A stretch of 21,000 nt of DNA. Source: Diplonema japonicum (Eukaryota; Protista; Euglenozoa: Diplonemea). Shown here one piece after another: positions 1 to 21,000 of the stretch. The DNA lies in NCBI GenBank assembly GCA_964019335.1, contig OZ025776.1, positions 1 to 21,000 of the forward strand, given 5' to 3'. Made by a program: the position numbers and the translations under genes. Each line of letters starts with the position of its first letter. Positions within the stretch are counted from its first letter, which is position 1. A model generated the notes under the pieces. That model saw only the letters and a list, made by a program, of their open reading frames with translations. It was not told where the DNA came from and searched no databases.

Positions 1-16
1 CCTAACAGTTATCCTT

Positions 17-34
17 ACGCGCGCGCGCGCGCGT
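17..34. repeat. A(CG)8T perfect 18-bp palindrome; also at 4526-4543, 5294-5311, 10287-10304, 11054-11071, 16155-16172, 16916-16933
   Basis: Read directly: tccttA(CG)8Tgggggatatagcg in all seven copies, in otherwise CpG-poor sequence. Confidence 0.95.
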
Positions 35-47
35 GGGGGATATAGCG

Positions 48-306
48 AGGTAATTTGCATAATTCTTACGTAGTGTCCCACAAGGGTTTCAGGAATTGGA
101 GGGCTACAGGGACGTAGATATTCTCTGGGACGTAGCGGGTTAATTTGCAGAAATCACCCGTAGGAGCCCAGAGAGGTGTCCCAATATTGGAGGGCTACAG
201 GGACGTAAACCATTCCAGGGCTCCTACGGGGTAATTCTACGAATTCACCCGATACAGCCCTGAAGGGGTTCAGGAATCGGAGGGCTACAGGGACGTAAAC
301 CCCTAG
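48..306 (+). repeat. Three degenerate ~90-bp direct repeats with invariant core ggagggctacagggacgta (98-116, 189-207, 279-297); repeated at the start of each unit
   Basis: Core motif spaced 91 and 90 bp; each repeat begins with a (g)taatt block. A single hybrid copy follows the second (CG)8 at ~4544-4635. Confidence 0.88.
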
Positions 307-359
307 CATGCCCCCTTATCCAGCCCTTCTGGGACCCCTCAATATACCCTCCTATTACC

Positions 360-952
360 ACCTATAATACTATCATTACATACTATGTAAGTACTGTGTA
401 TGTATCATATATCTATCCCATGTATACGGGGGATATATGTACATGCATAATACTAGTATTACATAATGATGTACTAACTGTATTAATGGTATCATAACCC
501 TACTCATCCCCTCATGACATCATCCTGGGGATGGGGACCCCTTCTCTAGATCCCAGGATCCCAGGGGTGGAGACCCAACCTCTAGATCCCAGGATCCCTA
601 GCTTGGACCACCATCTCTAGACACCACCACATCCTGAGAGTGTCTGTAGAGATACCTATAATACTATCATTACATACTATGTAAGTACTGTGTATGTATC
701 ATATATCTATCCCATACATACGGGGGATATATGTACATGCATAATACTAGTATTACATAATGATGTACTAACTGTATTAATGGTATCATAGCTCTACTCA
801 TCCCCTCATGACATCATCCTGGGGATGGGGACCCCTTCTCTAGATCCCAGGATCCCAGGGGGTGGAGACCCAACCTCTAGAGATCCCAGGATCCCTAGCT
901 TGGACCACCATCTCTAGACACCACCACATCCTGAGAGTGTCTGTAGAGATAC
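360..952 (+). repeat. Tandem duplication of a ~295-bp palindrome-rich block (360-653, 654-952); also 5637-6226, 11397-11988, 17259-17845
   Basis: acctataatactatcattacatactatgtaag...gtctgtagagat occurs twice per unit. It includes the palindrome taatactagtatta, the hairpin ttacata-c-tatgtaa and repeated gatcccaggatccc. Confidence 0.92.
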
Positions 953-1620
953 CAGCATACTACTTATCATGTAAGTACTCTGTGTAGTAGTACATACAGT
1001 ATATGATATACATGTACTAGCACTAACACAGTGTGTATGCCTACTTATCATAGTAGTAGTATTATCATATCATGGCATGATGGTACATCCTAAGGATGCC
1101 AGCATATCCAGAGAGTGGGGAGAACACACCATCTCTCTAGCCATGACATCATGGAGCATACCACTAACGGTACCATTACCATAGATCATGTCATGCATGG
1201 ATCATGGGATGTACAGAGTAGAGGTATTATCTACTAGAAGAGCAGCTGTGCTCTCTAGCCATACCATCTACAGAGTATGCTGGCAGTATACTCTAGTAAC
1301 CATGTACCTCATATCCTAGTCATGAGGATGGTGGCGGTATACTCTACCAACCATGTACCTCATACTGTAGCTACTCCATTATCCCTAGAGAAGGGAATGG
1401 TGGTGGTGTACATCCTAGGCAACAATGCCTGTGGGAATACCACCAGTACTACAGAGAGTATCTCATACCATATCCTAGTCATGAGGATGATGGTGTGCTC
1501 TCTCTAGGGAAGTACATCCGTAGTACTATCAATAGGATATCCTGTAGTAAGTACAATGGTAAGTACTCATACCATTCCTAGCTAACACAGGAGTATGAGC
1601 ATGGGCACATGCACAGCTAA

Positions 1621-1698
1621 CTACACCAGTAGAGTAGACAGCATGGATACTGTAAGCAGCAGGTATCAGTATCCTCTAGCTCTACAGATGGTGAGTAC
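1621..1698 (-). CDS. Short unique cassette; probable 3'-terminal gene module, tentatively nad1-like
   Basis: Unique sequence at ~1592-1698 between spacer motifs. The minus frame (UGA=W) reads LTICRARGYWYLLLTVSMLSTLLV-stop, a hydrophobic C-terminal helix. A plus frame is also open, so strand and identity are uncertain. Confidence 0.35.
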
Positions 1699-1822
1699 AT
1701 CCTGTCATACTATCAGTAAGTACAGTGGTAAGTACTCATGCCAATGCATGTAGTGCTACCAGTAGTACAGAGAGCACAGGCATGTATATCCTGGGAGTAC
1801 AGACACTGTCTAGCTAACACAG

Positions 1823-1957
1823 TACATCTACACCAATGCAGGGCACCACTGTCATTAGGTTAGTGATGACTGTCAGTGCTCAGTAAGACATGAGCCCTCA
1901 TGGTAGCACATATCCCATGAAGGCAATGCCCATCATGAGTAGCCATGTCAGCACCAG
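1823..1957 (-). CDS. cob: Apocytochrome b gene module (helix C / cd1, Qo site)
   Basis: With UGA=Trp it reads [44 protein letters not shown], matching the cytochrome b signature [23 protein letters not shown]..IPYIG. Missed by the ORF track because of two UGA codons. Confidence 0.97.
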
Positions 1958-2054
1958 CACTGCTACCGTATCTACTGTAGTAAGTACAATGGTAAGTACT
2001 CATGCCAATGCATGTAGTGCTACCAATACTATCAGTAGTATATCCATAGTACTA

Positions 2055-2375
2055 GCTGTAGTATCATACTCATGCTCTGCTGTAGACACATCAATACAGA
2101 TGTAAGTACTCACAGCACTGTACTACCAGGAAGACCAATGCCAGTAGTACTATCAGTAGTAGCTGTAGTGCTGCAGCCACGGGTGTGTGCATGGTGTGGC
2201 TATGCACAGCTGCTATGGAGACACAGCCACTGAAGAGCAGCAGGTCTGTGTTGAGCAGGGTGAGAGTGTTCTGATACACCAGAGCTACTCACTCTACACC
2301 ACCATCACTAACAGAGTATCCTAAGCTATGCAGAGAGCCACTGCTCTTGTGCAATGCATATGCTACGTACTCATA
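2055..2375 (-). CDS. cox3: Cytochrome c oxidase subunit 3 internal gene module
   Basis: Open with UGA=Trp across the cassette: YVAYALH...TLTLLNTDLLLFSGCVSIAAVH...LALVFLVVQCCEYLHLYW, matching Cox3 LLNTxxLLxSG and FxxxQxxEY motifs. Confidence 0.88.
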
Positions 2376-2400
2376 CTATCTCTAGTAGTACAGGAGAATG

Positions 2401-2465
2401 CATGTAGTACTATCAGTACTGTCAGTAGTATATCCTAGCTAAGCAGAGAAGGAGATGCTCCTGCT
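2401..2465 (+). repeat. Representative inter-cassette spacer built from recurring motifs
   Basis: The motifs gtaagtacaatggtaagtactcat(g/a)cca, ttcctagcta(a/g)cacagg, aatgcatgtagt(g/a)cta, tatcagtagta(c/t)atcc and gcagagaagga..ctcctgct recur between cassettes in all four arrays, always in + orientation. Confidence 0.88.
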
Positions 2466-2467
2466 TA

Positions 2468-2689
2468 TGCCACAGCTAAGACAGACACTGCATCCTTGTA
2501 GTAGTACATGAGGAAGGCATCAGCATCTACAGCTGTGCCTGGTGATGTGCTAGCACTGCTTGATCCCATGTAATGAAGGCATAGCAGATGAGCCATCACT
2601 GCTGCTAGCACTACGAAGGGCAGAAGGAAGTGCACTGTGAACATCCTCTGCACTGTGATGGTGGTAATGAAGTAGCCTCCTCAGCAATG
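2468..2689 (-). CDS. cob: Apocytochrome b gene module (helix D heme ligands, Qi site)
   Basis: Reads HCWGGYFITTITVQRMFTVHFLLPFVVLAAVMAHLLCLHYMGS...YYYKDAV, with WGG, HFxLPF, HLxxLH and YYxKD motifs. W in WGG is encoded by UGA. Confidence 0.97.
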
Positions 2690-3059
2690 CTAGGTCATGT
2701 ACACCATGAAAGCATGTAGTACTGTCAGTAGTATATCCAGTAGTAAGTACAATGGTAAGTACTCATGCCATTCCTAGCTAGCACAGGTAATGCATGTAGT
2801 ACTATCAGTAGTACAGAGAGTACAGGCATGTCATATCCTGGGAGTACACACACCAATGCATCCCAAGGATGTGGTGTGCTCTCTAGCCATACCATCTCAT
2901 GAGGATGGTGGCGGTATACTCTACCAACCATGTACCTCATAATGAGGAGAACATGCTGGTAAGGATACTAACTAAGCATGAATACCTCTAAGCAGTACTA
3001 TCCTAAGTATGGGCAGACACACAGAGGATGTATCCCCAATACAGATAGTATGATATCAG

Positions 3060-3840
3060 TAGTACATACCATGGCATAGTACAGAAGGAGATGCCATGTT
3101 AGCTGTGCAGTAGATATCTAGTGGCACCATTCCCTGAGAACACAGGAGTATGGAACCAGTGGAATACCAGGAGTACTAACACAGGTAATGCCACCAATAC
3201 ACTGAGTGTGTGGCATAGAGCATATCCTACCACCAGTACACACACAGTATGCATGAGCATATATCCTGTGTAGTGCTACATGTGCAATGGATGCATGTAG
3301 TACTGTCATAGGTATCATGGCTAGTACATAGTATGACATCAGTAGCACAGGTATCCTGAGAGTGGAGGAACCTGTGGAATACTAGAAGTACTAACTCAGA
3401 GAATACCAGGAGTATGGAACTACACCATCTCTAGCTAACACAGGTAATACCACCAGTAGCTGTGGTGGTGCCATGTACTGTATATGATATCATGCACACC
3501 AACCAATACATACTGTATGTACATAGGGAATACATAGTATGTAGTGCATAGAGCACAGGGGGATACATACTGTGCTAACTATGATATCTAGTGCTGTCAG
3601 TAGTACAGAGGTGTGCAGAGAGGGAATACCAGAAGTAGTGGAATCATGAGAACTAATAAACCGCTAATCTGGAGAAGTACGAAGGATAGGAACAGGGGCA
3701 TATCTAGTAGCACAGGCAATGGCACCAATGCACAGGATGCAGTGCTATGTACTGTATATGATATCATGCACACCAATACATACTGTATGTACATAGGGAA
3801 TACATAGTATGTAGTGCATAGAGCACAATGGAGGCATGTA
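3060..3840. repeat. Variable-length mosaic of repeated blocks in the constant region; also ~8030-9600, ~13905-15470, ~19895->21000
   Basis: Blocks such as atgtactgtatatgatatcatgcacaccaatacatactgtatgtacataggga and cacaggtatcctgagagtggaggaacctgtgg recur in different number and order per unit. Internal periods are 770 bp (13971/14741) and 783 bp (19962/20745). Confidence 0.9.
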
Positions 3841-3979
3841 GTACTACCATAGATAATAGGGTGTCTAGAGGATAGGTCATATGGGGTGATTATGGGCATA
3901 CCCAAATACCACTTTATTGGTAGGTACCTCATTCTATTCGAAGACTCAAGGGAATGGTCCCAGACCAATTCTGAGAAAT

Positions 3980-4046
3980 GATATCCCCTTTTTGGGAAAA
4001 GGCCCGGTGAGCCTCGGACCTCATTTCAGGCCTAAAAGGGGGTATC
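3980..4046. promoter_or_regulatory. Nested inverted repeat (stem-loop) in a compositionally distinct segment; also 9741-9807 and 15609-15674; function unknown
   Basis: gatatcccctttt ... aaaagggggtatc outer arms with inner aggcc/ggcct and tgag/ctca. The 4-5-nt A/T tracts of the constant region are concentrated here. Confidence 0.45.
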
Positions 4047-6937
4047 TAGGTGTATAGGGTATATCTAGTAATATGTAGGTAGTACATTATCCCTTGTATA
4101 CTGTAGTATTAGGGACATGTAGTGCTACCATTAGTACAGACAGTGTAACACAGTGAATATGTTGTTGCACCAGTATTCACACAGTGTATCTAAGTAAGTA
4201 ACTATGGAAGTACATGTTAATAGTAAGTACATCATCCCATAAGGGTGTGGCTATACATCTGGGGATACCTGTGGGGAGCATATACAGGTGGTAGTACAGA
4301 CACACTGTTTAGCTAAGTACCATAACACAGGAACATAGACAGTGTGAAGTACGTAATACCACAGTATGCATGGGATAACAGTAAGTACAGTAACTACACA
4401 TTATCAGAGAACAGCAGAGAGTGTGTAACCCCTGATAACGGGTGTGCTGTACAGAGGTATCCTTAGAAAGGGTGCTTTAACCTGGGGATTAGGGTGTAGA
4501 GACCTGTATATGGACTCATGTCCTTACGCGCGCGCGCGCGCGTGGGGGATATAGCGAGGTAATTCTACGAATTCATCCGTAGTGTCCCACAAGGGTTTCA
4601 GGAATTGCATAGCTACAGGGACGTAAACCCCTAGATTGGGACCCCCTCGGAACCCTTAGATCCTGGGATTAGGGATGCTAGGACCTGTTAGCAGAGGTAC
4701 GGAGGCCTGTGGGGAGTATATCCAGAGGTACTGATATCCATAACATACAAGAGGAAGCACACTGTTTAGCTAAGTACAGTAACACACTACACACTAACAC
4801 AGAGAGTAACACAGACAGTGTGTAGTAATACATGTAGTAGCACAAGCAGTGCTCCAGAAGGGTGTAGCTATACATCTGGGGATAACACCAACTAACAGGA
4901 ACACCAGCAGAAGGGTGTGTTCTCTGGGGGTAGCACAAGTAGGGTGTCTGGTGGTGGTATCTCATAACAGGGGATTCCATAGCAGGGCACGTCTGGGGGC
5001 CTGTAGTAAGTACCTGTTAGCAGGGACACACACTGTTACCAGGGACACACACTGTTAGCAGAGAGTATGTAACCACTGGTATGGGGTAGTACATTATCCC
5101 TTGTATACTGTGGTATTAGCCCCTACACACTGTCTACTAACTAACCCCTTGTCTACACACTGTCTACTAACCCCTATGTATTAGACCCTTATCCTAACCC
5201 CCCCTCTCTGTACCCCCCTTATATTGGGGGTCCTATACCCTACCCCTTTGGGGACACCTTGGGGGGCACCTTACTATCCTAACAGTTATCCTTACGCGCG
5301 CGCGCGCGCGTGGGGGATATAGCGAGGTAATTTGCATAATTCTTACGTAGTGTCCCACAAGGGTTTCAGGAATTGGAGGGCTACAGGGACGTAGATATTC
5401 TCTGGGACGTAGCGGGTTAATTTGCAGAAATCACCCGTAGGAGCCCAGAGAGGTGTCCCAATATTGGAGGGCTACAGGGACGTAAACCATTCCAGGGCTC
5501 CTACGGGGTAATTCTACGAATTCACCCGATACAGCCCTGAAGGGGTTCAGGAATCGGAGGGCTACAGGGACGTAAACCCCTAGCATGCCCCCTTATCCAG
5601 CCCTTCTGGGACCCCTCAATATACCCTCCTATTACCACCTATAATACTATCATTACATACTATGTAAGTACTGTGTATGTATCATATATCTATCCCATGT
5701 ATACGGGGGATATATGTACATGCATAATACTAGTATTACATAATGATGTACTAACTGTATTAATGGTATCATAGCCCTACTCATCCCCTCATGACATCAT
5801 CCTGGGGATGGGGACCCCTTCTCTAGATCCCAGGATCCCAGGGGTGGAGACCCAACCTCTAGATCCCAGGATCCCTAGCTTGGATACCATCTCTAGACAC
5901 CACTACATCCTGAGAGTGTCTGTAGAGATAACTATAATACTATCATTACATACTATGTAAGTACTGTGTATGTATCATATACCTATCCCATGCATACGGG
6001 GGATATATGTACATGCATAATACTAGTATTACATAATGATGTACTAACTGTATTAATGGTATCATAGCCCTACTCATCCCTCATGACATCATCCTGGGGA
6101 TGGGGACCCCTTCTCTAGATCCCAGGATCCCAGGGGTGGAGACCCAACCTCTAGATCCCAGGATCCCTAGCTTGGACCACCATCTCTAGACACCACCACA
6201 TCCTGAGAGAGTGTCTGTAGAGATACCAGCATACTACTTATCATGTAAGTACTCTGTGTAGTAGTACATACAGTATATGATATACATGTACTAGCACTAA
6301 CACAGTGTGTATGCCTACTTATCATAGTAGTAGTATTATCATATCATGGCATGATGGTACATCCTAAGGATGCCAGCATATCCAGAGAGTGGGGAGAACA
6401 CACCATCTCTCTAGCCATGACATCATGGAGCATACCACTAACGGTATCATTACCATAGATCATGTCATGCATGGATCATGGGATGTACAGAGTAGAGGTA
6501 TTATCTACTAGAAGAGCAGCTGTGCTCTCTAGCCATACCATCTACAGAGTATGCTGGCAGTATACTCTAGTAACCATGTACCTCATATCCTAGTCATGAG
6601 GATGGTGGCGGTATACTCTAGTAACCATGTACCTCATACTGTAGCTACTCCATTATCCCTAGAGAAGGGAATGGTGGTGGTGTACATCCTAGGCAACAAT
6701 GCCTGTGGGAATACCACCAGTACTACAGAGAGTATATCCAGTAGAGCAGAGAAGGAGATGCTCCTGCTCATGCCAATGCATGTAGTGCTACTAGTACTAT
6801 CAGTAGTATATCCTGTAGTAAGTACAATGGTAAGTACTCATGCCAATGCATGTAGTGCTATCAGTACTATCAGTAGTATATCCTAGTACTATAGATGATG
6901 TCATACTCATGTAGTGCTCTATCATCATACTCAGGGA

Positions 6938-7165
6938 ATGGTAGCTCTAGCATTAGGTGTAGCTATGATGAGCATAGCTTATGCCCTAGCCAAGAGCACA
7001 GCATCCCTACAGATGCTAGTACATGATGTAAGCAGCTATGATGCAGGGATACCATCTAGCCATCATGCTGGTGGATCACTAGACAGTGGTGCCTTCGTCC
7101 TTCTGTGATACCTGGTGCTCTACGAGATACTGCTCCTGTGAACAGCACCAGCACAGTCACCGTAG
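6938..7165 (+). CDS. nad3: Divergent NADH dehydrogenase subunit 3, probably the 5' module
   Basis: Reads MVALALGVAMMSIAYALA...VSSYDAGIPSS...AFVLLWYLVLYEILLLW (two UGA=W), which follows the ND3 layout TM1 - SxYECG loop - FLxFDLEIxLLxPW. The third TM helix is absent. Confidence 0.68.
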
Positions 7166-7449
7166 TAGTGCTATCAGTACTATCAGTAGTACATCCTAGC
7201 TAAGCAGAGAAGGAGATGCTCCTGCTCATGCTGTGGCTGCATCAGTACTGTCATACTATCAGTAAGTACAGTAGTAAGTACTCATACCATTCCTAGCTAG
7301 CACAGGTAATGCATGTAGTACTATCAGTAGCTACTCCATTATCCCTGTTCTAGGGATGGAGTGGTGGTGTACATCCTAGGCAACAATGCCTGTGGGAATA
7401 CCACCAGTACTGTCAGTAGGATATCCTAGTTAAGCAGAGAAGGAAGTAC

Positions 7450-7647
7450 TGCACTCATGTACATGGAAGCACTAGCTCCTGTGAGTATGTACATCAGTAT
7501 CATAGCTAACATGTACATGGCATAAGCACTTCTGCTGCTCACACTGTGCTGGTGCATGTACCCATAGATAAGCAGGAGCATGACCTCAAAGAGAGCGTAG
7601 AAGACTACGAGGTCATCAAGCACTACTAATAGAGCATAGCAGAGGGA
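7450..7647 (-). CDS. nad4: NADH dehydrogenase subunit 4 internal gene module (TM4-TM6)
   Basis: Reads LCYALLVVLDDLVVFYALFEVMLLLIYGYM...SSRSAYAMYMLAMILMYILTG, matching ND4 DLxxFYxxFE...R..A...Y..G with the conserved TM5 Glu. Confidence 0.88.
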
Positions 7648-10600
7648 AGTACATCCCTGTGCTGTGGATACAATGTAGTGCTACCAGTACTACCAATAGT
7701 ACATCCTGTAGTAAGTACAGTGGTAAGTACTCATACCATTCCTAGCTAGCACAGGTAATGCATGTAGTACTATCAGTAGTACAGAGAGTACAGGCATGTA
7801 TATCCTGGGAGTACACACACCAATGCATCCCAAGGATGTGGTGTGCTCTCTAGCCATACCATCTCATGAGGATGGTGGCGGTATACTCTACCAACCATGT
7901 ACCTCATAATGAGGAGAACATGCTGGTAAGGATACTAACTAAGCATGAATACCTCTAAGCAGTACTATCCTAAGTATGGGCAGACACACAGAGGATGTAT
8001 CCCCAATACAGATAGTATGATATCAGTAGTACATCCTGTAGTACATACCATGGCATAGTACAGAAGGAGATGCCATGTTAGCTGTGCAGTAGATATCTAG
8101 TGGCACCATTCCCTGAGAACACAGGAGTATGGAACCAGTGGAATACCAGGAGTACTAACACAGGTAATGCCACCAATACACTGAGTGTGTGGCATAGAGC
8201 ATATCCTACCACCAGTACACACACAGTATGCATGAGCATATATCCTGTGTAGTGCTACATGTGCAATGGATGCAATGTAGTACTGTCATAGGTATCATGG
8301 CTAGTACATAGTATGATATCAGTAGCACAGGTATCCTGAGAGTGGAGGAACCTGTGGAATACTAGAAGTACTAACTCAGAGAATACCAGGAGTATGAAGT
8401 ACACCATCTCCAGCTAACACAGGTAATACCACCAGTAGCTGTGGTGGTGCCATGTACTGTATATGATATCATGCACACCAATACATACTGTATGTACATA
8501 GGGAATACATAGTATGTAGTGCATAGAGCACAGGGGATACATACTGTGCTAACTATGATATCTAGTGCTGTCAGTAGTACAGAGGTATCCTGAGAGTGGT
8601 GGTAACCCTAAGTTAGGGAAAGTACTAACTCAGAGAATACCAGGAGTATGGAACTAGGGAAGTACGTCATATCCTAGTAGCACAGGCAATGGCACCAATG
8701 CACAGGATGCAGTGCTATGTACTGTATATGATATCATGCACACCAATACATACTGTATGTACATAGGGATACATACTGTGCAGTGCATAGAGCACAGGGG
8801 ATACATACTGTGCTAACTATGATATCTAGTGCTGTCAGTAGTACAGAGGTATCCTGAGAAGGATAGTGATCCCAGAGAAGCAGTGGAATCAGGAGAACCA
8901 CTAACTTGGGGAATCCCTGAAGTACACCATCTCTAGCTAACACAGGTAATACCACCAGTAGCTGTGGTGGTGCCATGTACTGTATATGATATCATGCACA
9001 CCAATACACACAGTATGCATGAGCATATATCCTGTGTAGTGCTACATGTGCAATGGATGCATGTAGTACTGTCATAGGTATCATGGCTAGTACATAGTAT
9101 GATATCAGTAGCACAGGTATCCTGAGAGTGGAGGAACCTGTGGAATACTAGAAGTACTAACTCAGAGAATACCAGGAGTATGAAGTACACCATCTCCAGC
9201 TAACACAGGTAATACCACCAGTAGCTGTGGTGGTGCCATGTACTGTATATGATATCATGCACACCAATACATACTGTATGTACATAGGGAATACATAGTA
9301 TGTAGTGCATAGAGCACAGGGGGATACATACTGTGCTAACTATGATATCTAGTGCTGTCAGTAGTACAGAGGTGTGCAGAGAGGGAATACCAGAAGTAGT
9401 GGAATCATGAGAACTAATAAACCGCTAATCTGGAGAAGTACGAAGGATAGGAACAGGGGCATATCTAGTAGCACAGGCAATGGCACCAATGCACAGGATG
9501 CAGTGCTATGTACTGTATATGATATCATGCACACCAATACATACTGTATGTACATAGGGAATACATAGTATGTAGTGCATAGAGCACAATGGAGGCATGT
9601 AGTACTACCATAGATAATAGGGTGTCTAGAGGATAGGTCATATGGGGTGATTATGGGCATACCCAAATACCACTTTATTGGTAGGTACCTCATTCTATTC
9701 GAAGACTCAAGGGAATGGTCCCAGACCAATTCTGAGAAATGATATCCCCTTTTTGGGAAAAGGCCCGGTGAGCCTCGGACCTCATTTCAGGCCTAAAAGG
9801 GGGTATCTAGGTGTATAGGGTATATCTAGTAATATGTAGGTAGTACATTATCCCTTGTATACTGTAGTATTAGGGACATGTAGTGCTACCATTAGTACAG
9901 ACAGTGTAACACAGTGAATATGTTGTTGCACCAGTATTCACACAGTGTATCTAAGTAAGTAACTATGGAAGTACATGTTAATAGTAAGTACATCATCCCA
10001 TAAGGGTGTGGCTATACATCTGGGGATACCTGTGGGGAGCATATACAGGTGGTAGTACAGACACACTGTTTAGCTAAGTACCATAACACAGGAACATAGA
10101 CAGTGTGAAGTACGTAATACCACAGTATGCATGGGATAACAGTAAGTACAGTAACTACACATTATCAGAGAACAGCAGAGAGTGTGTAACCCCTGATAAC
10201 GGGTGTGCTGTACAGAGGTATCCTTAGAAAGGGTGCTTTAACCTGGGGATTAGGGTGTAGAGACCTGTATATGGACTCATGTCCTTACGCGCGCGCGCGC
10301 GCGTGGGGGATATAGCGAGGTAATTCTACGAATTCATCCGTAGTGTCCCACAAGGGTTTCAGGAATTGCATAGCTACAGGGACGTAAACCCCTAGATTGG
10401 GACCCCCTCGGAACCCTTAGATCCTGGGATTAGGGATGCTAGGACCTGTTAGCAGAGGTACGGAGGCCTGTGGGGAGTATATCCAGAGGTACTGATATCC
10501 ATAACATACAAGAGGAAGCACACTGTTTAGCTAAGTACAGTAACACACTACACACTAACACAGAGAGTAACACAGACAGTGTGTAGTAATACATGTAGTA

Positions 10601-12681
10601 GCACAAGCAGTGCTCCAGAAGGGTGTAGCTATACATCTGGGGATAACACCAACTAACAGGAACACCAGCAGAAGGGTGTGTTCTCTGGGGGTAGCACAAG
10701 TAGGGTGTCTGGTGGTGGTATCTCATAACAGGGGATTCCATAGCAGGGCACGTCTGGGGGCCTGTAGTAAGTACCTGTTAGCAGGGACACACACTGTTAC
10801 CAGGGACACACACTGTTAGCAGAGAGTATGTAACCACTGGTATGGGGTAGTACATTATCCCTTGTATACTGTGGTATTAGCCCCTACACACTGTCTACTA
10901 ACTAACCCCTTGTCTACACACTGTCTACTAACCCCTATGTATTAGACCCTTATCCTAACCCCCCCTCTCTGTACCCCCTTATATTGGGGGTCCTATACCC
11001 TACCCCTTTGGGGACACCTTGGGGGGCACCTTACTATCCTAACAGTTATCCTTACGCGCGCGCGCGCGCGTGGGGGATATAGCGAGGTAATTTGCATAAT
11101 TCTTACGTAGTGTCCCACAAGGGTTTCAGGAATTGGAGGGCTACAGGGACGTAGATATTCTCTGGGACGTAGCGGGTTAATTTGCAGAAATCACCCGTAG
11201 GAGCCCAGAGAGGTGTCCCAATATTGGAGGGCTACAGGGACGTAAACCATTCCAGGGCTCCTACGGGGTAATTCTACGAATTCACCCGATACAGCCCTGA
11301 AGGGGTTCAGGAATCGGAGGGCTACAGGGACGTAAACCCCTAGCATGCCCCCTTATCCAGCCCTTCTGGGACCCCTCAATATACCCTCCTATTACCACCT
11401 ATAATACTATCATTACATACTATGTAAGTACTGTGTATGTATCATATATCTATCCCATGTATACGGGGGATATATGTACATGCATAATACTAGTATTACA
11501 TAATGATGTACTAACTGTATTAATGGTATCATAACCCTACTCATCCCCTCATGACATCATCCTGGGGATGGGGACCCCTTCTCTAGATCCCAGGATCCCA
11601 GGGGTGGAGACCCAACCTCTAGATCCCAGGATCCCTAGCTTGGACCACCATCTCTAGACACCACTACATCCTGAGAGTGTCTGTAGAGATACCTATGATA
11701 CTACTATTACATAATATGTAAGTACTGTGTATGTATCATATATCTATCCCATGCATACGGAGGATATATGTACATGCATAATACTAGTATTACATAATGA
11801 TGTACTAACTGTATTAATGGTATCATAGCTCTACTCATCCCCTCATGACATCATCCTGGGGATGGGGACCCCTTCTCTAGATCCCAGGATCCCAGGGGTG
11901 GAGACCCAACCTCTAGAGATCCCAGGATCCCTAGCTTGGACCACCATCTCTAGACACCACCACATCCTGAGAGTGTCTGTAGAGATACCAGCATACTACT
12001 TATCATGTAAGTACTCTGTGTAGTAGTACATACAGTATATGATATACATGTACTAGCACTAACACAGTGTGTATGCCTACTTATCATAGTAGTAGTATTA
12101 TCATATCATGGCATGATGGTACATCCTAAGGATGCCATCATATCCAGAGAGTGGGAGAACATACCATCTCTCTAGCCATGACATCATGGAGCATACCACT
12201 AACGGTATCATTACCATAGATCATGTCATGCATGGATCATGGGATGTACAGAGTAGAGGTATTATCTACTAGAAGAGCAGCTGTGCTCTCTCTAGCCATA
12301 CCATCTACAGAGTATGCTGGCAGTATACTCTAGTAACCATGTACCTCATATCCTAGTCATGAGGATGGTGGCGGTATACTCTAGTAACCATGTACCTCAT
12401 ATTGTAGCTACTCCATTATCCCTAGAGAAGGGAATGGTGGTGGTGTACATCCTAGGCAACAATGCCTGTGGGGAATACCACCAGTACTACAGAGAGTATC
12501 TCATACCATATCCTAGTCATGAGGATGATGGTGTGCTCTCTCTCTAGGGAAGTACATCCGTAGTACTATCAGTAGGATATACAGTAGTAAGTACAATGGT
12601 AAGTACTCATGCCAATGCATGTAGTGCTACCAGTACTATCAGTAGTACATCCTGTAGAGCAGAGAAGGAAGTACTCCTGCT

Positions 12682-12933
12682 CCTATCACCAATGCTATCA
12701 GTACCACAGGAGGGCTATGCACTGTACTCCTAGCAATAGCACTGATGCTGTCTACATCCTTAGAGGCATCCCTGTGAGACACTCTGCAGACACGAGGTAC
12801 TTCAGTAGTGTCTACTCATGTACGTAGAGCAGTGCTCGTAGGATCTACTAACCTAGACACTGCTAGCAGAGGACAGCTCATGCTACATACCTGTACAGCT
12901 AACAGTATCCGTAGTGGTGTCAGCATGCAGTGC
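12682..12933 (+). CDS. cox1: Probable cytochrome c oxidase subunit 1 3'-terminal module (helix XII and C-terminal tail)
   Basis: Open with UGA=W across the ~250-bp cassette: ITNAISTTGGLCTVLLAIALMLSTSLEASLWDTLQTR...QLMLHTC, resembling Cox1 WNxISSxGSxxS...IWE and the terminal HT motif. Divergent, so moderate confidence. Confidence 0.6.
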
Positions 12934-13019
12934 TATCAATACCACCAGTACTGTGAGTAGTACATCCTGTGAGTAATGCTAGTAGAATATACTCATGCCA
13001 TTCCTAGCTAACACAGGAG

Positions 13020-13259
13020 AGTGCATGAAGCACTCATGTCTGCCATGACTGGTACCAACAGCTGTTGTCCCAGAGTACACCAACTAACATACATCAGCAG
13101 TACCAGCTGTAGAGCATATCATCATCCTACGTAGCAGCACAGCAGCTGTGTGGGTGAGTATGATCATGCAGAGCTACTGTAGCAGAGGGTAGCTGTAGTA
13201 GCTGTAGTACTGACCATGATAGTATACTCAGGTAGTACAGAGAGCACAGCTGCTCTCAT
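13020..13259 (-). CDS. Probable 5'-terminal module of a complex I antiporter-like subunit (nad5 or nad4)
   Basis: Frame open across the whole cassette with UGA=W: MRAAVLSVLPEYTIMVSTTATTATLCYSSSAWSYSPTQLLCCYVGWWYALQLVLLMYVSWCTLGQQLLVPVMADMSASC. The W-x3-G-x9-D-x-S spacing recalls the N-terminal W..G..DxLS region of ND4/ND5. Confidence 0.45.
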
Positions 13260-13384
13260 ACATCCAGTAGTAAGTACAATGGTAAGTACTCATACCATTC
13301 CTAGCTAGCACAGGTAATGCATGTAGTACTATCAGTAGTACATCCTGTAGAGCAGAGAAGGAAGTACTCCTGCTCATGTCATAG

Positions 13385-13585
13385 CTAAGACAGGCATTGA
13401 TCAGTATCATTGCACACTGCTGCTACCATGAGTATAGACAAGGAGCATGACAGCATACTCAGCCTACTCAGTGGAGAGGTGTGCATGGAAGCTACTCCTA
13501 GATCTACCAGTACTCTGAGGAGTGCTCATGGAAGTATCATTACTACCAGGAACACCAGCTGCATCAATACCATCAGTGCTATCAG
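13385..13585 (-). CDS. Unassigned hydrophobic 3'-terminal gene module (possibly last cob module)
   Basis: Reads LIALMVLMQLVFLVVMILPWALLRVLVDLGVASMHTSPLSRLSMLSCSLSILMVAAVCNDTDQCLS-stop (UGA=W), with the stop inside unique sequence. Identical copy in unit 4. Confidence 0.55.
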
Positions 13586-16500
13586 TAAGTACAATGATAA
13601 GTACTCATACCATTCCTAGCTAACACAGGTAATGCATATAGTACTATCAGTAGTACAGAGAGTACAGGCATGTATATCCTGGGAGTACACACACCAATGC
13701 ATCCCAGGGATGTGGTGTGCTCTCTAGCCATACCATCTCATGAGGATGGTGGCGGTATACTCTACCAACCATGTACCTCATAATGAGGAGAACATGCTGG
13801 TAAGGATACTAACTAAGCATGAATACCTCTAAGCAGTACTATCCTAAGTATGGGCAGACACACAGAGGATGTATCCCCAATACAGATAGTATGATATCAG
13901 TAGTACATCCTGTAGTACATACCATGGCATAGTACAGAAGGAGATGCCATGTTAGCTGTGCAGTAGATATCTAGTGGCACCATTCCCTGAGAACACAGGA
14001 GTATGGAACCAGTGGAATACCAGGAGTACTAACACAGGTAATGCCACCAATACACTGAGTGTGTGGCATAGAGCATATCCTACCACCAGTACACACACAG
14101 TATGCATGAGCATATATCCTGTGTAGTGCTACATGTGCAATGGATGCATGTAGTACTGTCATAGGTATCATGGCTAGTACATAGTATGATATCAGTAGCA
14201 CAGGTATCCTGAGAGTGGAGGAACCTGTGGAATACTAGAAGTACTAACTCAGAGAATACCAGGAGTATGGAACTACACCATCTCCAGCTAGCACAGGTAA
14301 TACCACCAGTAGCTGTGGTGGTGCCATGTACTGTATGATATCATGCACACCAATACATACTGTATGTACATAGGGAATACATAGTATGTAGTGCATAGAG
14401 CACAGGGGATACATACTGTGCTAACTATGATATCTAGTGCTGTCAGTAGTACAGAGGTATCCTGAGAAGGGTAGTGATCCCAGAGAAGCAGTGGAATCAG
14501 GAGAACCACTAACTTGGGGAATCCCTGAAGTAGTACATCCCTGGTAACACAGGCAATGGCACCAATGCACAGGATGCAGTGCCATGTACTATATACCATA
14601 TCATGCACACCAATACACAGTATGCATGAGCATATATCCTGTGTAGTGCTACATGTGCAATGGATGCATGTAGTACATCCTGTAGTACATACCATGGCAT
14701 AGTACAGAAGGAGATGCCATGTTAGCTGTGCAGTAGATATCTAGTGGCACCATTCCCTGAGAACACAGGAGTATGGAACCAGTGGAATACCAGGAGTACT
14801 AACACAGGTAATGCCACCAATACACTGAGTGTGTGGCATAGAGCATATCCTACCACCAGTACACACACAGTATGCATGAGCATATATCCTGTGTAGTGCT
14901 ACATGTGCAATGGATGCATGTAGTACTGTCATAGGTATCATGGCTAGTACATAGTATGATATCAGTAGCACAGGTATCCTGAGAGTGGAGGAACCTGTGG
15001 AGGAACCTGTGGAATACTAGAAGTACTAACTCAGAGAATACCAGGAGTATGGAACTACACCATCTCCAGCTAGCACAGGTAATACCACCAGTAGCTGTGG
15101 TGGTGCCATGTACTGTATATGATATCATGCACACCAATACATACTGTATGTACATAGGGAATACGTACTGTGCAGTGCATAGAGCACAGGGGATACATAC
15201 TGTGCTAACTATGATATCTAGTGCTAGGAGTAGTACAGAGGTGTGCAGAGGGAATACCAGAAGTAGTGGAATCATGAGAACTAAATAAACCACTAATCTG
15301 GAGAAGTACGAAGGATAGGAACAGGGCATATCTAGTAGCACAGGCAATGGCACCAATGCACAGGATGCAGTGCCATGTACTGTATACCATATCATGCACA
15401 CCAATACATACTGTATGTACGTAGGGAATACATAGTATGTAGTGCATAGAGCACAATGGAGGCATGTAGTACTACCATAGATAATAGGGTGTCTAGAGGA
15501 TAGGTCATATGGGGTGATTATGGGCATACCCAAAATACCACTTTATTGGTAGGTACCTCATTCTATTCGAAGACTCAAGGGAATGGTCCCAGACCAATTC
15601 TGAGAAATGATATCCCCTTTTTGGGAAAAGGCCCGGTGAGCCTCGGACCTCATTTCAGGCCTAAAAGGGGTATCTAGGTGTACAGGGTATATCTAGTAAT
15701 ATGTAGGTAGTACATTAGTCCCTTGTATACTGTAGTATTGGGGACATGTAGTGCTACCAGTAGTACAGACAGTGTAACACAGTGAATATGTTGTTGCACC
15801 AGTATTCACACAGTGTATCTAAGTAAGTAACTATGGAAGTACATGTTAATAGTAAGTACACCATCCCAGAAGGGTGTGGCTATACATCTGGGGATACCTG
15901 TGGGGAGCATATACAGGTGGTAGTACAGACACACTGTTTAGCTAAGTACCATAACACAGGAACGTAGACAGTGTGAAGTACGTAATACCACAGTATGCAT
16001 GGGATAACAGTAAGTACAGTAACTACACATTATCAGAGAACAGCAGAGAGTGTGTAACCCCTGATAACGGGTGTGCTGTACAGAGGTATCCTTAGAAAGG
16101 GTGCTTTAACCTGGGGATTAGGGTGTAGAGACCTGTATATGGACTCATGTCCTTACGCGCGCGCGCGCGCGTGGGGGATATAGCGGGGTAATTCTACGAA
16201 TTCATCCGTAGTGTCCCACAAGGGTTTCAGGAATTGCATAGCTACAGGGACGTAAACCCCTAGATTGGGACCCCTTGGAACCCTTAGATCCTGGGATTAG
16301 GGATGCTAGGACCTGTTAGCAGAGGTACGGAGGCCTGTGGGGAGTACATCCAGAGGTACTGATATCCATAACATACAAGAGGAAGCACACTGTTTAGCTA
16401 AGTACAGTAACACACTACACACTAACACAGAGAGTAACACAGACAGTGTGTAGTAATACATGTAGTAGCACAAGCAGTGCTCCAGAAGGGTGTAGCTATA

Positions 16501-18667
16501 CATCTGGGGATAACACCAACTAACAGGAACACCAGCAGAAGGGTGTGTTCTCTGGGGGTAGCACAAGTAGGGTGTCTGGTGGTGGTATCTCATAACAGGG
16601 GATTCCATAGCAGGGCACGTCTGGGGGCCTGTAGTAAGTACCTGTTAGCAGAGACACACACTGTTACCAGGGACACACACTGTTAGCAGAGAGTATGTAA
16701 CCACTGGTATGGGGTAGTACATTATCCCTTGTATACTGTGGTATTAGCCCCTACACACTGTCTACTAACTAACCCCTTGTCTACACACTGTCTACTAACC
16801 CCTATGTATTAGACCCTTATCCTAACCCCCCTCTCTGTACCCCTTATATTGGGGTCCTATACCCTACCCCTTTGGGGACACCTTGGGGCACCTTACTATC
16901 CTAACAGTTATCCTTACGCGCGCGCGCGCGCGTGGGGGATATAGCGAGGTAATTTGCATAATTCTTACGTAGTGTCCCACAAGGGTTTCAGGAATTGCAT
17001 AGCTACAGGGACGTAGATATTCTCTGGGACGTAGCGGGTTAATTTGCAGAAATCACCCGTAGGAGCCCAGAGAGGTGTCCCAATATTGGAGGGCTACAGG
17101 GACGTAAACCATTCCAGGGCTCCTACGGGGTAATTCTACGAATTCACCCGATACAGCCCTGAAGGGGTTCAGGAATCGGAGGGCTACAGGGACGTAAACC
17201 CCTAGCATGCCCCCTTATCCAGCCCTTCTGGGACCCCTCAATATACCCTCCTATTACCACCTATAATACTATCATTACATACTATGTAAGTACTGTGTAT
17301 GTATCATATATCTATCCCATGTATACGGGGGATATATGTACATGCATAATACTAGTATTACATAATGATGTACTAACTGTATTAATGGTATCATAACCCT
17401 ACTCATCCCCTCATGACATCATCCTGGGGATGGGGACCCCTTCTCTAGATCCCAGGATCCCAGGGGTGGAGACCCAACCTCTAGATCCCAGGATCCCTAG
17501 CTTGGATACCATCTCTAGACACCACCACATCCTGAGAGTGTCTGTAGAGATAACTATAATACTATCATTACATACTATGTAAGTACTGTGTATGTATCAT
17601 ATATCTATCCCATACATACGGGGGATATATGTACATGCATAATACTAGTATTACATAATGATGTACTAACTGTATTAATGGTATCATAGCTCTACTCATC
17701 CCTCATGACATCATCCTGGGGATGGGGACCCCTTCTCTAGATCCCAGGATCCCAGGGGTGGAGACCCAACCTCTAGATCCCAGGATCCCTAGCTTGGATA
17801 CCATCTCTAGACACCACCACATCCTGAGAGTGTCTGTAGAGATACCAGCATACTACTTATCATGTAAGTACTCTGTGTAGTAGTACATACAGTATATAAT
17901 ATACATGTACTAGCACTAACACAGTGTGTATGCCTACTTATCATAGTAGTAGTATTATCATATCATGGCATGATGGTACATCCTAAGGATGCCAGCATAT
18001 CCAGAGAGTGGGGAGAACACACCATCTCTCTAGCCATGACATCATGGAGCATACCACTAACGGTATCATTACCATAGATCATGTCATGCATGGATCATGG
18101 GATGTACAGAGTAGAGGTATTATCTACTAGAAGAGCAGCTGTGCTCTCTAGCCATACCATCTACAGAGTATGGTGGCGGTATACTCTACCAACCATGTAC
18201 CTCATACTGTAGCTACTCCATTATCCCTAGAGAAGGGAATGGTGGTGGTGGTGTACATCCTAGGCAACAATGCCTGTGGGAATACCACCAGTACTGTGAG
18301 TAGTACATCCAGTAGAGCAGAGAAGGAGATGCTCCTGCTCATACCATGGCTGCATCAGTACTGTCATACTATCAGTAGGATATACTGTAGTAAGTACAAT
18401 GATAAGTACTCATGCCAATGCATGTAGTGCTACCAGTACTATCAGTAGTATATACTGTAGTAAGTACTCATACCATTCCTAGCTAACACAGGTAATGCAT
18501 GTAGTGCTATCAGTAGTACAGAGAGTACAGGCATGTCATATCCTAGTCATGAGGATGATGGTGTGCTCTCTAGGGAAGTACATCCATAGTACTACCAGTA
18601 GATCCATAGCTAAGCAGAGAAGGAGAGGCACTGTTAGCTGTAGTAGTATCATAGCTAGGCAATGGGG

Positions 18668-18856
18668 AATGCATCATGCATTGTCCCTGGTGGCTTACGT
18701 AGTGCTACCTTAGCTCATAGCCTGCATGTGCTATTGGAGTGCATCCATGCCATGACTATGAAGATGGACAGCTTAGTCAATGCTGTTGCTCTACACAGAG
18801 TATGAGCCACTAGACTGACTAGCATTGGAGTGGTGGCTACGCAGGGCACCAGCTCC
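18668..18856 (+). CDS. nad7: NADH dehydrogenase subunit 7 (49 kDa) internal gene module
   Basis: Reads ASCIVPGGLRSATLAHSLHVLLECIHAMTMKMDSLVNAVALHRVWATRLTSIGVVATQ, colinear with Nad7 AAYIRPGGV...IDELE..L..NRIWKQRLVDIGVV. W in RVW is UGA. Confidence 0.93.
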
Positions 18857-19074
18857 TCTTCATACCATGTACTGTACTAGCTACTTGCAAGTAGCCTGCT
18901 CATGCTACCACCAGTACTGTGAGTAGTAGTACATCCTGTAGTAAGTACAATGATAAGTACTCATGCCAATGCATGTAGTGCTACCAGTAGTATCAGTAGT
19001 ACATCCTGTAGTAAGTACTCATACCATTCCTAGCTAGCACAGGTAATGCATGTAGTACTATCAGTACTATCAGT

Positions 19075-19209
19075 ACAGCTGTACATGTAGTAGCTCATGC
19101 AGCCTTCAAGGCCATGCTGTTCATGTGCTTAGGTGTCCTGCTCCATGGAAGTGGTGTACAGGACAGTAGAGCATTACCAGCAGAGCACAGCTACATCATC
19201 CTAAGCCTG
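19075..19209 (+). CDS. nad5: NADH dehydrogenase subunit 5 internal gene module
   Basis: Reads AVHVVAHAAFKAMLFMCLGVLLHGSGVQDSR, matching ND5 FHLxTHAFFKALLFxCxGxIIH....QDIR. Confidence 0.93.
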
Positions 19210-19317
19210 TAAGTAAGTACAATGATAAGTACTCATGCCAATGCATGTAGTGCTACCAGTAGTATCAGTAGTACATCCTGTAGAGCAGAGAAGGAAGTAC
19301 TCCTGCTCATGTCATAG

Positions 19318-19518
19318 CTAAGACAGGCATTGATCAGTATCATTGCACACTGCTGCTACCATGAGTATAGACAAGGAGCATGACAGCATACTCAGCCTAC
19401 TCAGTGGAGAGGTGTGCATGGAAGCTACTCCTAGATCTACCAGTACTCTGAGGAGTGCTCATGGAAGTATCATTACTACCAGGAACACCAGCTGCATCAA
19501 TACCATCAGTGCTATCAG
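19318..19518 (-). CDS. Second copy of the unassigned 3'-terminal module at 13385-13585
   Basis: Base-for-base identical by eye to the unit-3 cassette (offset 5933). Confidence 0.55.
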
Positions 19519-21000
19519 TAGGTACAGTGCTATGTACTCATGCCAATGCATGTAGTGCTACCAGTACTATCAGTAGTATATACTGTAGTAAGTACTCATA
19601 CCATTCCTAGCTAACACAGGTAATGCATGTAGTACTATCAGTAGTACAGAGAGCACAGGCATGTATATCCTGGGAGTACACACACCAATATATCCCAGGG
19701 ATGTGGTGTGCTCTCTAGCCATACCATCTCATGAGGATGGTGGCGGTATACTCTACCAACCATGTACCTCATAATGAGGAGAACATGCTGGTAAGGATAC
19801 TAACTAAGCATGAATACCTCTAAGCAGTACTATCCTAAGTATGGGCAGACACACAGAGGATGTATCCCCAATACAGATAGTATGATATCAGTAGTACATC
19901 CTGTAGTACATACCATGGCATAGTACAGAAGGAGATGCCATGTTAGCTGTGCAGTAGATATCTAGTGGCACCATTCCCTGAGAACACAGGAGTATGGAAC
20001 CAGTGGAATACCAGGAGTACTAACACAGGTAATGCCACCAATACACTGAGTGTGTGGCATAGAGCACATCCTACCACCAGTACACACACAGTATGCATGA
20101 GCATATATCCTGTGTAGTGCTACATGTGCAATGGATGCATGTAGTACTGTCATAGGTATCATGGCTAGTACATAGTATGATATCAGTAGCACAGGTATCC
20201 TGAGAGTGGAGGAACCTGTGGAATACTAGAAGTACTAACTCAGAGAATACCAGGAGTATGGAACTAGGGAAGTACGGAGGTATCCTAGTAGCACAGGTAA
20301 TACCACCAGTAGCTGTGGTGGTGCCATGTACTGTATATGATATCATGCACACCAATACATACTGTATGTACATAGGGAATACGTACTGTGCAGTGCATAG
20401 AGCACAGGGGATACATACTGTGCTAACTATGATATCTAGTACTATCAGTAGTACAGAGGTATCCTTAGAAGGGTAGTGATCCCAGAGAAGCAGTGGAATC
20501 AGGAGAACCACTAACTTGGGAATCCCTGAAGTAGTATATCCCTGGTAACACAGGTAATACCACCAGTAGCTGTGGTGATGCCATGTACTGTATATGATAT
20601 CATGCACACCAATACATACTGTATGTACATAGGGAATACGTACTGTGCAGTGCTACATGTGCAATGGATGCATGTAGTACATCCTGTAGTACATACCATG
20701 GCATAGTACAGAAGGAGATGCCATGTTAGCTGTGCAGTAGATATCTAGTGGCACCATTCCCTGAGAACACAGGAGTATGGAACCAGTGGAATACCAGGAG
20801 TACTAACACAGGTAATGCCACCAATACACTGAGTGTGTGGCATAGAGCATATCCTACCACCAGTACAGACACAGTATGCATGAGCATATATCCTGTGTAG
20901 TGCTACATGTGCAATGGATGCATGTAGTACTGTCATAGGTATCATGGCTAGTACATAGTATGATATCAGTAGCACAGGTATCCTGAGAGTGGAGGAACCT

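Follow-up and report, generated by a model that had tools for sequence, protein, structure and literature searches.

Why does a 21,000-bp contig carry fragments of cob, cox3 and several nad genes and not one complete gene? The contig, C132, is one of the 132 in a 62.5-Mb assembly, all of which was searched, and was analysed over its entire length (the window). We conclude with high confidence that C132 is a mitochondrial contig of the marine diplonemid Diplonema japonicum, in which units built on a constant region carry arrays of 2–4 cassettes whose gene modules are trimmed and ligated into mRNAs. A preliminary description, made from the letters alone, had proposed a diplonemid-type genome with 2–4 cassettes per unit and modular spacers. 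The common constant region, the recurring spacer motifs and a joined cob transcript bear this proposal out.

The base composition of C132 is periodic at ~5.8 kb. The window comprises ~3.6 units of 5.3–6.0 kb, each consisting of the common constant region and an array of 2–4 low-copy blocks, with a variable region of 0.8–1.1 kb per unit. In a self-comparison, the constant region was 97–100% identical between units at spacings of 5277, 5760 and 5862 bp. Two tandem repeats, one of 91 nt in 2.5 copies and one of 293 nt in 2 copies, lie in its copy between the first two arrays (2712..6886), as do repeat families of 260–790 nt. The families recur at 3059–3900, 8038–9660, 13912–15530 and 19903–21000 with a copy number that varies between units, and the units differ in length because of this variation. 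The assembly holds 11 mitochondrial contigs totaling ~217 kb. The constant region of C132 is also present on C124–C130, and more distant versions of it are found on C122, C123 and C131.

To locate the variable parts, we used k-mer copy counts for the window together with 125 kb of sequence from the remaining mitochondrial contigs; a further ~70 kb of those contigs was covered by whole-genome searches only. The counts delimit exactly 12 low-copy blocks of 110–321 bp, grouped 4+2+3+3 in arrays A–D, in line with the number and sizes of the cassettes previously described. The blocks are separated by spacers of ~70–260 bp composed of recurring motifs, typically ...GCCAATGCATGTAGTGCTACCAGTACTATCAGTAGTACATCCT(GTAGAGCAGAGAAGGA...) on the left and AGTAAGTACAATGGTAAGTACTCATGCC... 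on the right. The orientation of the spacer motifs is constant regardless of the strand of the module, and modules occur on both strands. Seven modules could be identified by gene. None of the genes is complete and unrelated genes are interleaved, as had been noted before: array A holds cob, cox3 and cob in that order. A scan of the window against Rfam found no group I or group II intron and no other Rfam family, and a tRNA scan of the window found no tRNA genes; these empty scans do not decide for or against an rRNA module.

Are these fragments expressed and joined? We compared the contigs of four public sequencing runs with positions 1500–7400 of the window. Runs X2 and X4 are DNA-like, their depth being far greater over the constant region than over the cassettes, and run X15 is RNA-like, with modules 10–100x deeper than the constant region. 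A 1212-nt contig of X15 reads from 1953 to 1815 (cob module n) and then directly from 2687 to 2491 (module n+1), a jump of 873 bp back on the DNA with no letters in between. The codon at the junction, for which module n supplies TA and module n+1 the T, encodes Tyr, so that the genomic TAG is bypassed and the reading frame is kept. The two cob modules, neighbors in the mRNA, thus share a strand and are stored at 1807–2711 in reverse order with the cox3 module between them. Simple cis processing cannot join same-chromosome neighbors stored in this order. Other X15 contigs leave the DNA at module ends: the cox3 module has exact boundaries at 2343 and 2077, beyond which follow 214 and 229 foreign letters, and a further contig departs at 7154, the end of nad3 module 1, and continues for 94 letters. 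Exact ends are thereby defined for four modules (two cob, cox3 and nad3 module 1). A junction with both partners was observed once, for cob n/n+1, with no added letters.

A 10-mer, CAGTGTCTGT, lies at 1799–1808 and 2481–2490 (− strand), 0–6 nt downstream of the 3′ end of each cob module. It occurs twice in the window against 0.23 occurrences expected, and 2 of 100 shuffled sequences reached at least two occurrences; the observation was made post hoc. Apart from this 10-mer, the flanks of the four modules with defined ends, a small number of ends, have no obvious common motif.

Fragments of this kind could be dead debris, either pieces of pseudogenes or nuclear copies of mitochondrial DNA, with the working genes located elsewhere. 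Their fragmentary look and a 39-nt deletion in the C132 copy of nad4 would fit. However, six-frame profile searches of the 62.5-Mb assembly found no intact copy of cob, cox1, cox3, nad7, nad2/4/5 or atp6; fragments alone were recovered, and these were confined to the mitochondrial contigs C123–C130 and C132, save for a sub-threshold cox3 match on C100 (E 0.31). The preliminary description had named intact copies elsewhere, together with a lack of junction-spanning transcripts, as the finding that would point to debris; these searches of the assembly revealed no such copies, and the X15 contig spans the cob junction. The in-frame joining of the cob modules, the match of the nad3 module to a published Nad3 protein (63/64) and blocks in arrays C and D that have no copies elsewhere in the genome also speak against debris, and we regard this explanation as extremely improbable.

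Several observations weigh against the reading of C132 as an array-bearing chromosome contig whose modules are ligated into mRNAs. Three of the 12 blocks have no gene assignment, and the atp6 and nad5 labels discussed below are weakly founded. The runs were analysed as k-mer contigs, which break at repeats and do not display transcript ends, strand or abundance. X15 was classed as RNA by its depth pattern and the joined contig, not by its record. In the X15 cob contig, moreover, the 5′ end of module n (1953) adjoins a 56-nt stretch that resembles spacer and comes from the opposite strand (2005–2060 minus base 2035). A chimera formed in the library, a DNA variant with a rearrangement or an artefact of the contig could account for this joint. 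We considered the 56-nt piece as an upstream cob module and rejected it, as it contains an in-frame TAG and has no similarity to cob. On C124, a near match to the piece (L004 4268–4324) precedes a cob module by ~95 nt.

Two further observations concern the runs themselves. An X4 contig links 1519 to 2738, with 20 other letters replacing all of array A, and probably derives from a sister chromosome whose cassette site is empty or differently occupied. Runs from eight studies, filed under nine organism labels, contain between 60 and 98% of the sampled words of 1500–7400. A run share of ~0.72 equals the share of constant region in this interval. The other run labels may represent endosymbionts or related strains sequenced together with a host.

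Judged from sequence identity, the host is D. japonicum YPF1604: the nad3 module is 98% identical to the Nad3 of D. japonicum (TaxID 2508216), as compared to ~60% for the nad7 module and the Nad7 of D. ambulator. The size and contig count of the assembly agree with the genome note for this strain (peDipJapo1.1), which reports 121 scaffolds totaling 62.30 Mb and, in addition, a multipartite mitochondrial genome. The reading of UGA as Trp is supported by TGA codons at conserved Trp positions of cob and by Nad3, which aligns through a TGA under code 4.

In our reading, each 5.3–6.0-kb unit comprises a non-coding constant region, common to a chromosome class, and an array of 2–4 cassettes. A cassette consists of one gene module of ~140–270 nt with a few to ~50 unique flanking bases, and recurring-motif spacers separate the cassettes. 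We propose that modules of different genes on either strand are transcribed and then trimmed to exact ends, and their transcripts ligated end to end with partners from the same and other chromosomes to give complete mRNAs in which UGA is read as Trp. In D. papillatum, modules are transcribed separately, trimmed, in some cases modified by 3′ U additions or by C-to-U or A-to-I changes, and joined free of introns; the candidate joining enzyme is a mitochondrial RtcB-type ligase, and the choice of partners is attributed to unknown protein factors (PMC12699882). By analogy with this literature, joining in D. japonicum may likewise take place without introns, through an RtcB-type RNA ligase acting on 3′-phosphate and 5′-OH ends, with partners presumably selected by unknown protein factors. 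The assembly contains an RtcB gene on C36.

Table 1. Features of the 21,000-bp window.
Feature	Position	Strand	Evidence or remark
Constant region, 3′ part of partial first unit	1..1591		97–99% identical to 5278–6845, 11038–12614, 16900–18206
Array A, low-copy blocks	1592–1701, 1807–1964, 2076–2396, 2466–2711		k-mer copy counts
Low-copy block 1, array A	1592..1701		100% identical copy on C130; no Pfam/Rfam match
cob module n, 139 nt, GYVLPWG motif region	1815..1953	−	PF00033 positions 69–150, E 4e-8 (genome-scale)
cox3 module, 267 nt, COX3 profile positions ~103–195	2077..2343	−	Pfam COX3 E 3e-4; genome-wide E 2e-3
cob module n+1, 197 nt	2491..2687	−	Pfam Cytochrom_B_N_2 E 5e-8; PF00033 positions 145–189, genome-scale E 4e-5
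Constant region, arrays A to B	2712..6886		self-comparison
Array B, low-copy blocks	6887–7164, 7451–7672		k-mer copy counts
nad3 module 1, GTG start, codons 1–80	6914..7154	+	UniRef A0A6G5ZVF5 (Nad3, Diplonema japonicum), 63/64 identity
nad4 module, variant with 39-nt in-frame deletion	7451..7672	−	C130 copies reach PF00361 cut-off, positions 2–72
Constant region, arrays B to C	7673..12675		self-comparison, k-mer counts
Array C, low-copy blocks	12676–12937, 13018–13223, 13369–13578		k-mer copy counts
Low-copy block, array C	12676..12937		open frames on both strands
Low-copy block, array C	13018..13223	−	80-codon frame; only − strand open under code 4; no Pfam match
Block shared by arrays C and D, copy 1	13369..13578	−	ATG-started hydrophobic frame, SPL motif
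Constant region, arrays C to D	13579..18626		self-comparison, k-mer counts
Array D, low-copy blocks	18627–18905, 19076–19211, 19302–19533		k-mer copy counts
nad7 module	18627..18905, homology 18668–18835	+	61% identity to D. ambulator Nad7 residues 149–204, E 7.5e-16
nad5-like module, motif HAAFKAMLF...QD.R	19076..19211	+	PF00361 positions 192–226, E 0.015
Block shared by arrays C and D, copy 2	19302..19533	−	identical over ~240 nt to 13369–13578
Constant region, 5′ part, up to contig end	19534..21000		95.6% identical to 13574–14996

Gene searches were run piece by piece, and the joined reading was used solely for a local check of the frame. Pfam searches with single stop-free pieces matched just cob, cox3 and a weak nad5-type piece, most pieces being too short and divergent. 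In array A, cob module n has in-frame TGA codons at conserved Trp positions (PWG, SYW), and the cox3 module has an open frame of 88 codons in which TGA is read as Trp. The first block of this array (Table 1) is covered in X15 at a depth above the level of the constant region.

Array B carries nad3 and nad4. The 63/64 match to A0A6G5ZVF5 concerns the stop-free part of the nad3 module. Residues 1–80 of the 106-aa A0A6G5ZVF5 map to 6914–7153 (tblastn, code 4), and the published Nad3 extends past the 80 codons of the C132 module. The nad4 module is intact in all four copies on C130. In the alignment of the C132 copy with C130 (L010 403–669), 39 nt are missing between TAGCTA direct repeats and the conserved TYTVLGS stretch is lost; the C132 copy represents either a defective form in heteroplasmy or a rare variant that the assembler picked up.

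In array D, the nad7 module is also tied to PF00346 (E 3.7e-9) through a 92-aa database protein. The motif in the adjacent block suggests nad5 within the nad2/4/5 family. The block shared by arrays C and D has no third copy in a whole-genome search. It is probably atp6 module 1 (atp6-m1), given that Kaur et al. place D. japonicum atp6-m1 on two chromosomes (PMC7049700); no direct homology test of the block succeeded and the ESM Atlas gave no usable match. Two blocks of array C have no gene name. In the block at 13018–13223, a GW...W pattern resembles the start of nad2/nad5-type subunits, a likeness that is an inference only. The block at 12676–12937 had been read by eye as the C-terminus of nad7. 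This candidate was dropped, as its alignment to D. ambulator Nad7 gave z<1 over shuffles and it had no database match. A phmmer search of PDB sequences returned nothing for the nad7 piece and antibody noise alone for the 12676–12937 and nad3 pieces. Within the whole assembly, the blocks at 12676–12937, 13018–13223, 18627–18905 and 19076–19211 are confined to C132.

The gene list of the preliminary description, which comprised cob, cox3, nad3, nad4, nad5, nad7 and probably cox1, is therefore altered in part. The assignments of cob, cox3, nad3, nad4 and nad7 are supported, and the nad5-like piece has the PF00361 match alone (Table 1). The cox1 assignment is rejected: PF00115 has no match on C132, and its matches fall on C123, C124, C126 and C127. 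Further corrections are that atp6 is probably present and that some modules lie on the + strand.

Do the four arrays reside on one molecule? We see an even chance that the assembler created the chain A-B-C-D by passing from unit to unit through the 4-kb constant region, which is nearly identical between them, and that the real chromosomes are separate circles of ~5.3–6 kb with one array each, which would leave the picture of each unit, with its 2–4 cassettes, untouched. Other contigs resemble readings of several laps around a circle: C123 has an exact spacing of 8457 bp three times, and C122, C125, C127 and C131 each contain ~1.7–2 laps. Oriented as C132, C130 reads A-A-B-B-B-B, a tandem pair of array A and then four tandem copies of array B. 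The archetype D. papillatum has monomeric circles of 6–7 kb (PMC7049700), and the peDipJapo1.1 mitochondrial contigs were assembled with MitoHiFi/hifiasm from high-fidelity (HiFi) reads with a mean length of 9.4 kb; the genome note mentions no curation of the mitochondrial graph. On the other hand, reads of this length exceed one unit. Array A is followed by array B on both C130 and C132 despite differing sequence between the arrays, namely the 39-nt deletion and a repeat difference of ~1 kb by which the constant region after array A is longer on C130 than on C132. Slight differences also exist among the tandem B copies on C130. The shared A-then-B order hints either at preferred neighbors or at very similar constant regions of both chromosomes.

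Alternatively, the units could be physically linked in larger molecules, as hetero-multimeric circles or as head-to-tail concatemers formed by recombination in the constant region, a reading that we hold to be somewhat less than evenly probable. The read length, the A-B order in two differing contigs and the non-identical B copies on C130 count in its favor, as does C128, where proton-antiporter-type modules alternate in an X-Y-X pattern (1992–2318, 7789–8094 and 13537–13863) with a period of 11.5 kb. Such alternation would be consistent with a circle bearing two arrays, as in class C of the D. ambulator chromosomes. Two-cassette chromosomes were confirmed in D. ambulator by polymerase chain reaction (PCR; PMC5658414), and the sizes of D. 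japonicum chromosomes are stated as unknown (PMC7049700). Against linkage, the run contigs break at repeats and give no read-level support, the ends of C132 do not overlap so that no circle is closed, and the mostly same-type neighbors on other contigs fit lap artefacts equally well. That the constant region links arrays of different chromosomes into molecules of at least 20 kb, as hetero-multimers or recombining concatemers, appears to us rather unlikely. If true, the textbook view that each cassette has its own small circle would fail for D. japonicum. How large the D. japonicum mitochondrial chromosomes physically are, and whether they are linked, is a question that C132 raises and that the 2020 study had left open.

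The diplonemid system is among the strangest arrangements of gene expression known, and C132 brings no new kind of biology to it. The preliminary description had made novelty dependent on the taxon, and the taxon decides against it: both the system and its D. japonicum version are already known, because Kaur et al. described the mitochondrial genome of D. japonicum in 2020 (NAR 48:2694, PMC7049700). Using short reads and RNA-seq, they reported 30 chromosomes in 5 classes with 80 modules. Twenty-three of the 30 chromosomes are multi-module, the most of any diplonemid, and the median cassette is ~1 kb owing to the many modules per cassette (PMC7049700). The descriptive value of C132 lies in full-length units with their constant-region repeats, the exact ends of four modules, the cob pair in reverse order and the nad4 deletion variant.

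With the genome of Kaur et al., C132 shares both organism and system, as the 63/64 match of Nad3 illustrates. That study, based on short reads, had neither the chromosome sizes nor the complete constant regions; the long-read contig adds unit lengths of 5.3–6.0 kb, the constant-region repeats and chains of units. D. papillatum (Vlcek et al. 2011, PMC3035467) resembles C132 in its constant region with unique cassettes, the short unique flanks of its modules, the joining of separately transcribed modules, UGA as Trp and the lack of tRNA genes. C132 differs from it in that each unit has a tandem series of 2–4 cassettes bearing modules, which lie on both strands. In D. ambulator (Valach et al. 2017, PMC5658414), as on C132, modules of unrelated genes reside on one chromosome, and PCR confirmed circles with two cassettes; multi-module cassettes make up ~15% in D. 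ambulator and are the rule in D. japonicum. A likeness of layout extends to the minicircles of kinetoplastids, which are many small molecules with a conserved region and a few short cassettes framed by recurring motifs, and whose RNAs, like those of C132, are needed for building mitochondrial mRNAs. Kinetoplastid minicircles differ in that they encode guide RNAs for U insertion and deletion instead of coding pieces, are catenated and belong to a different family.

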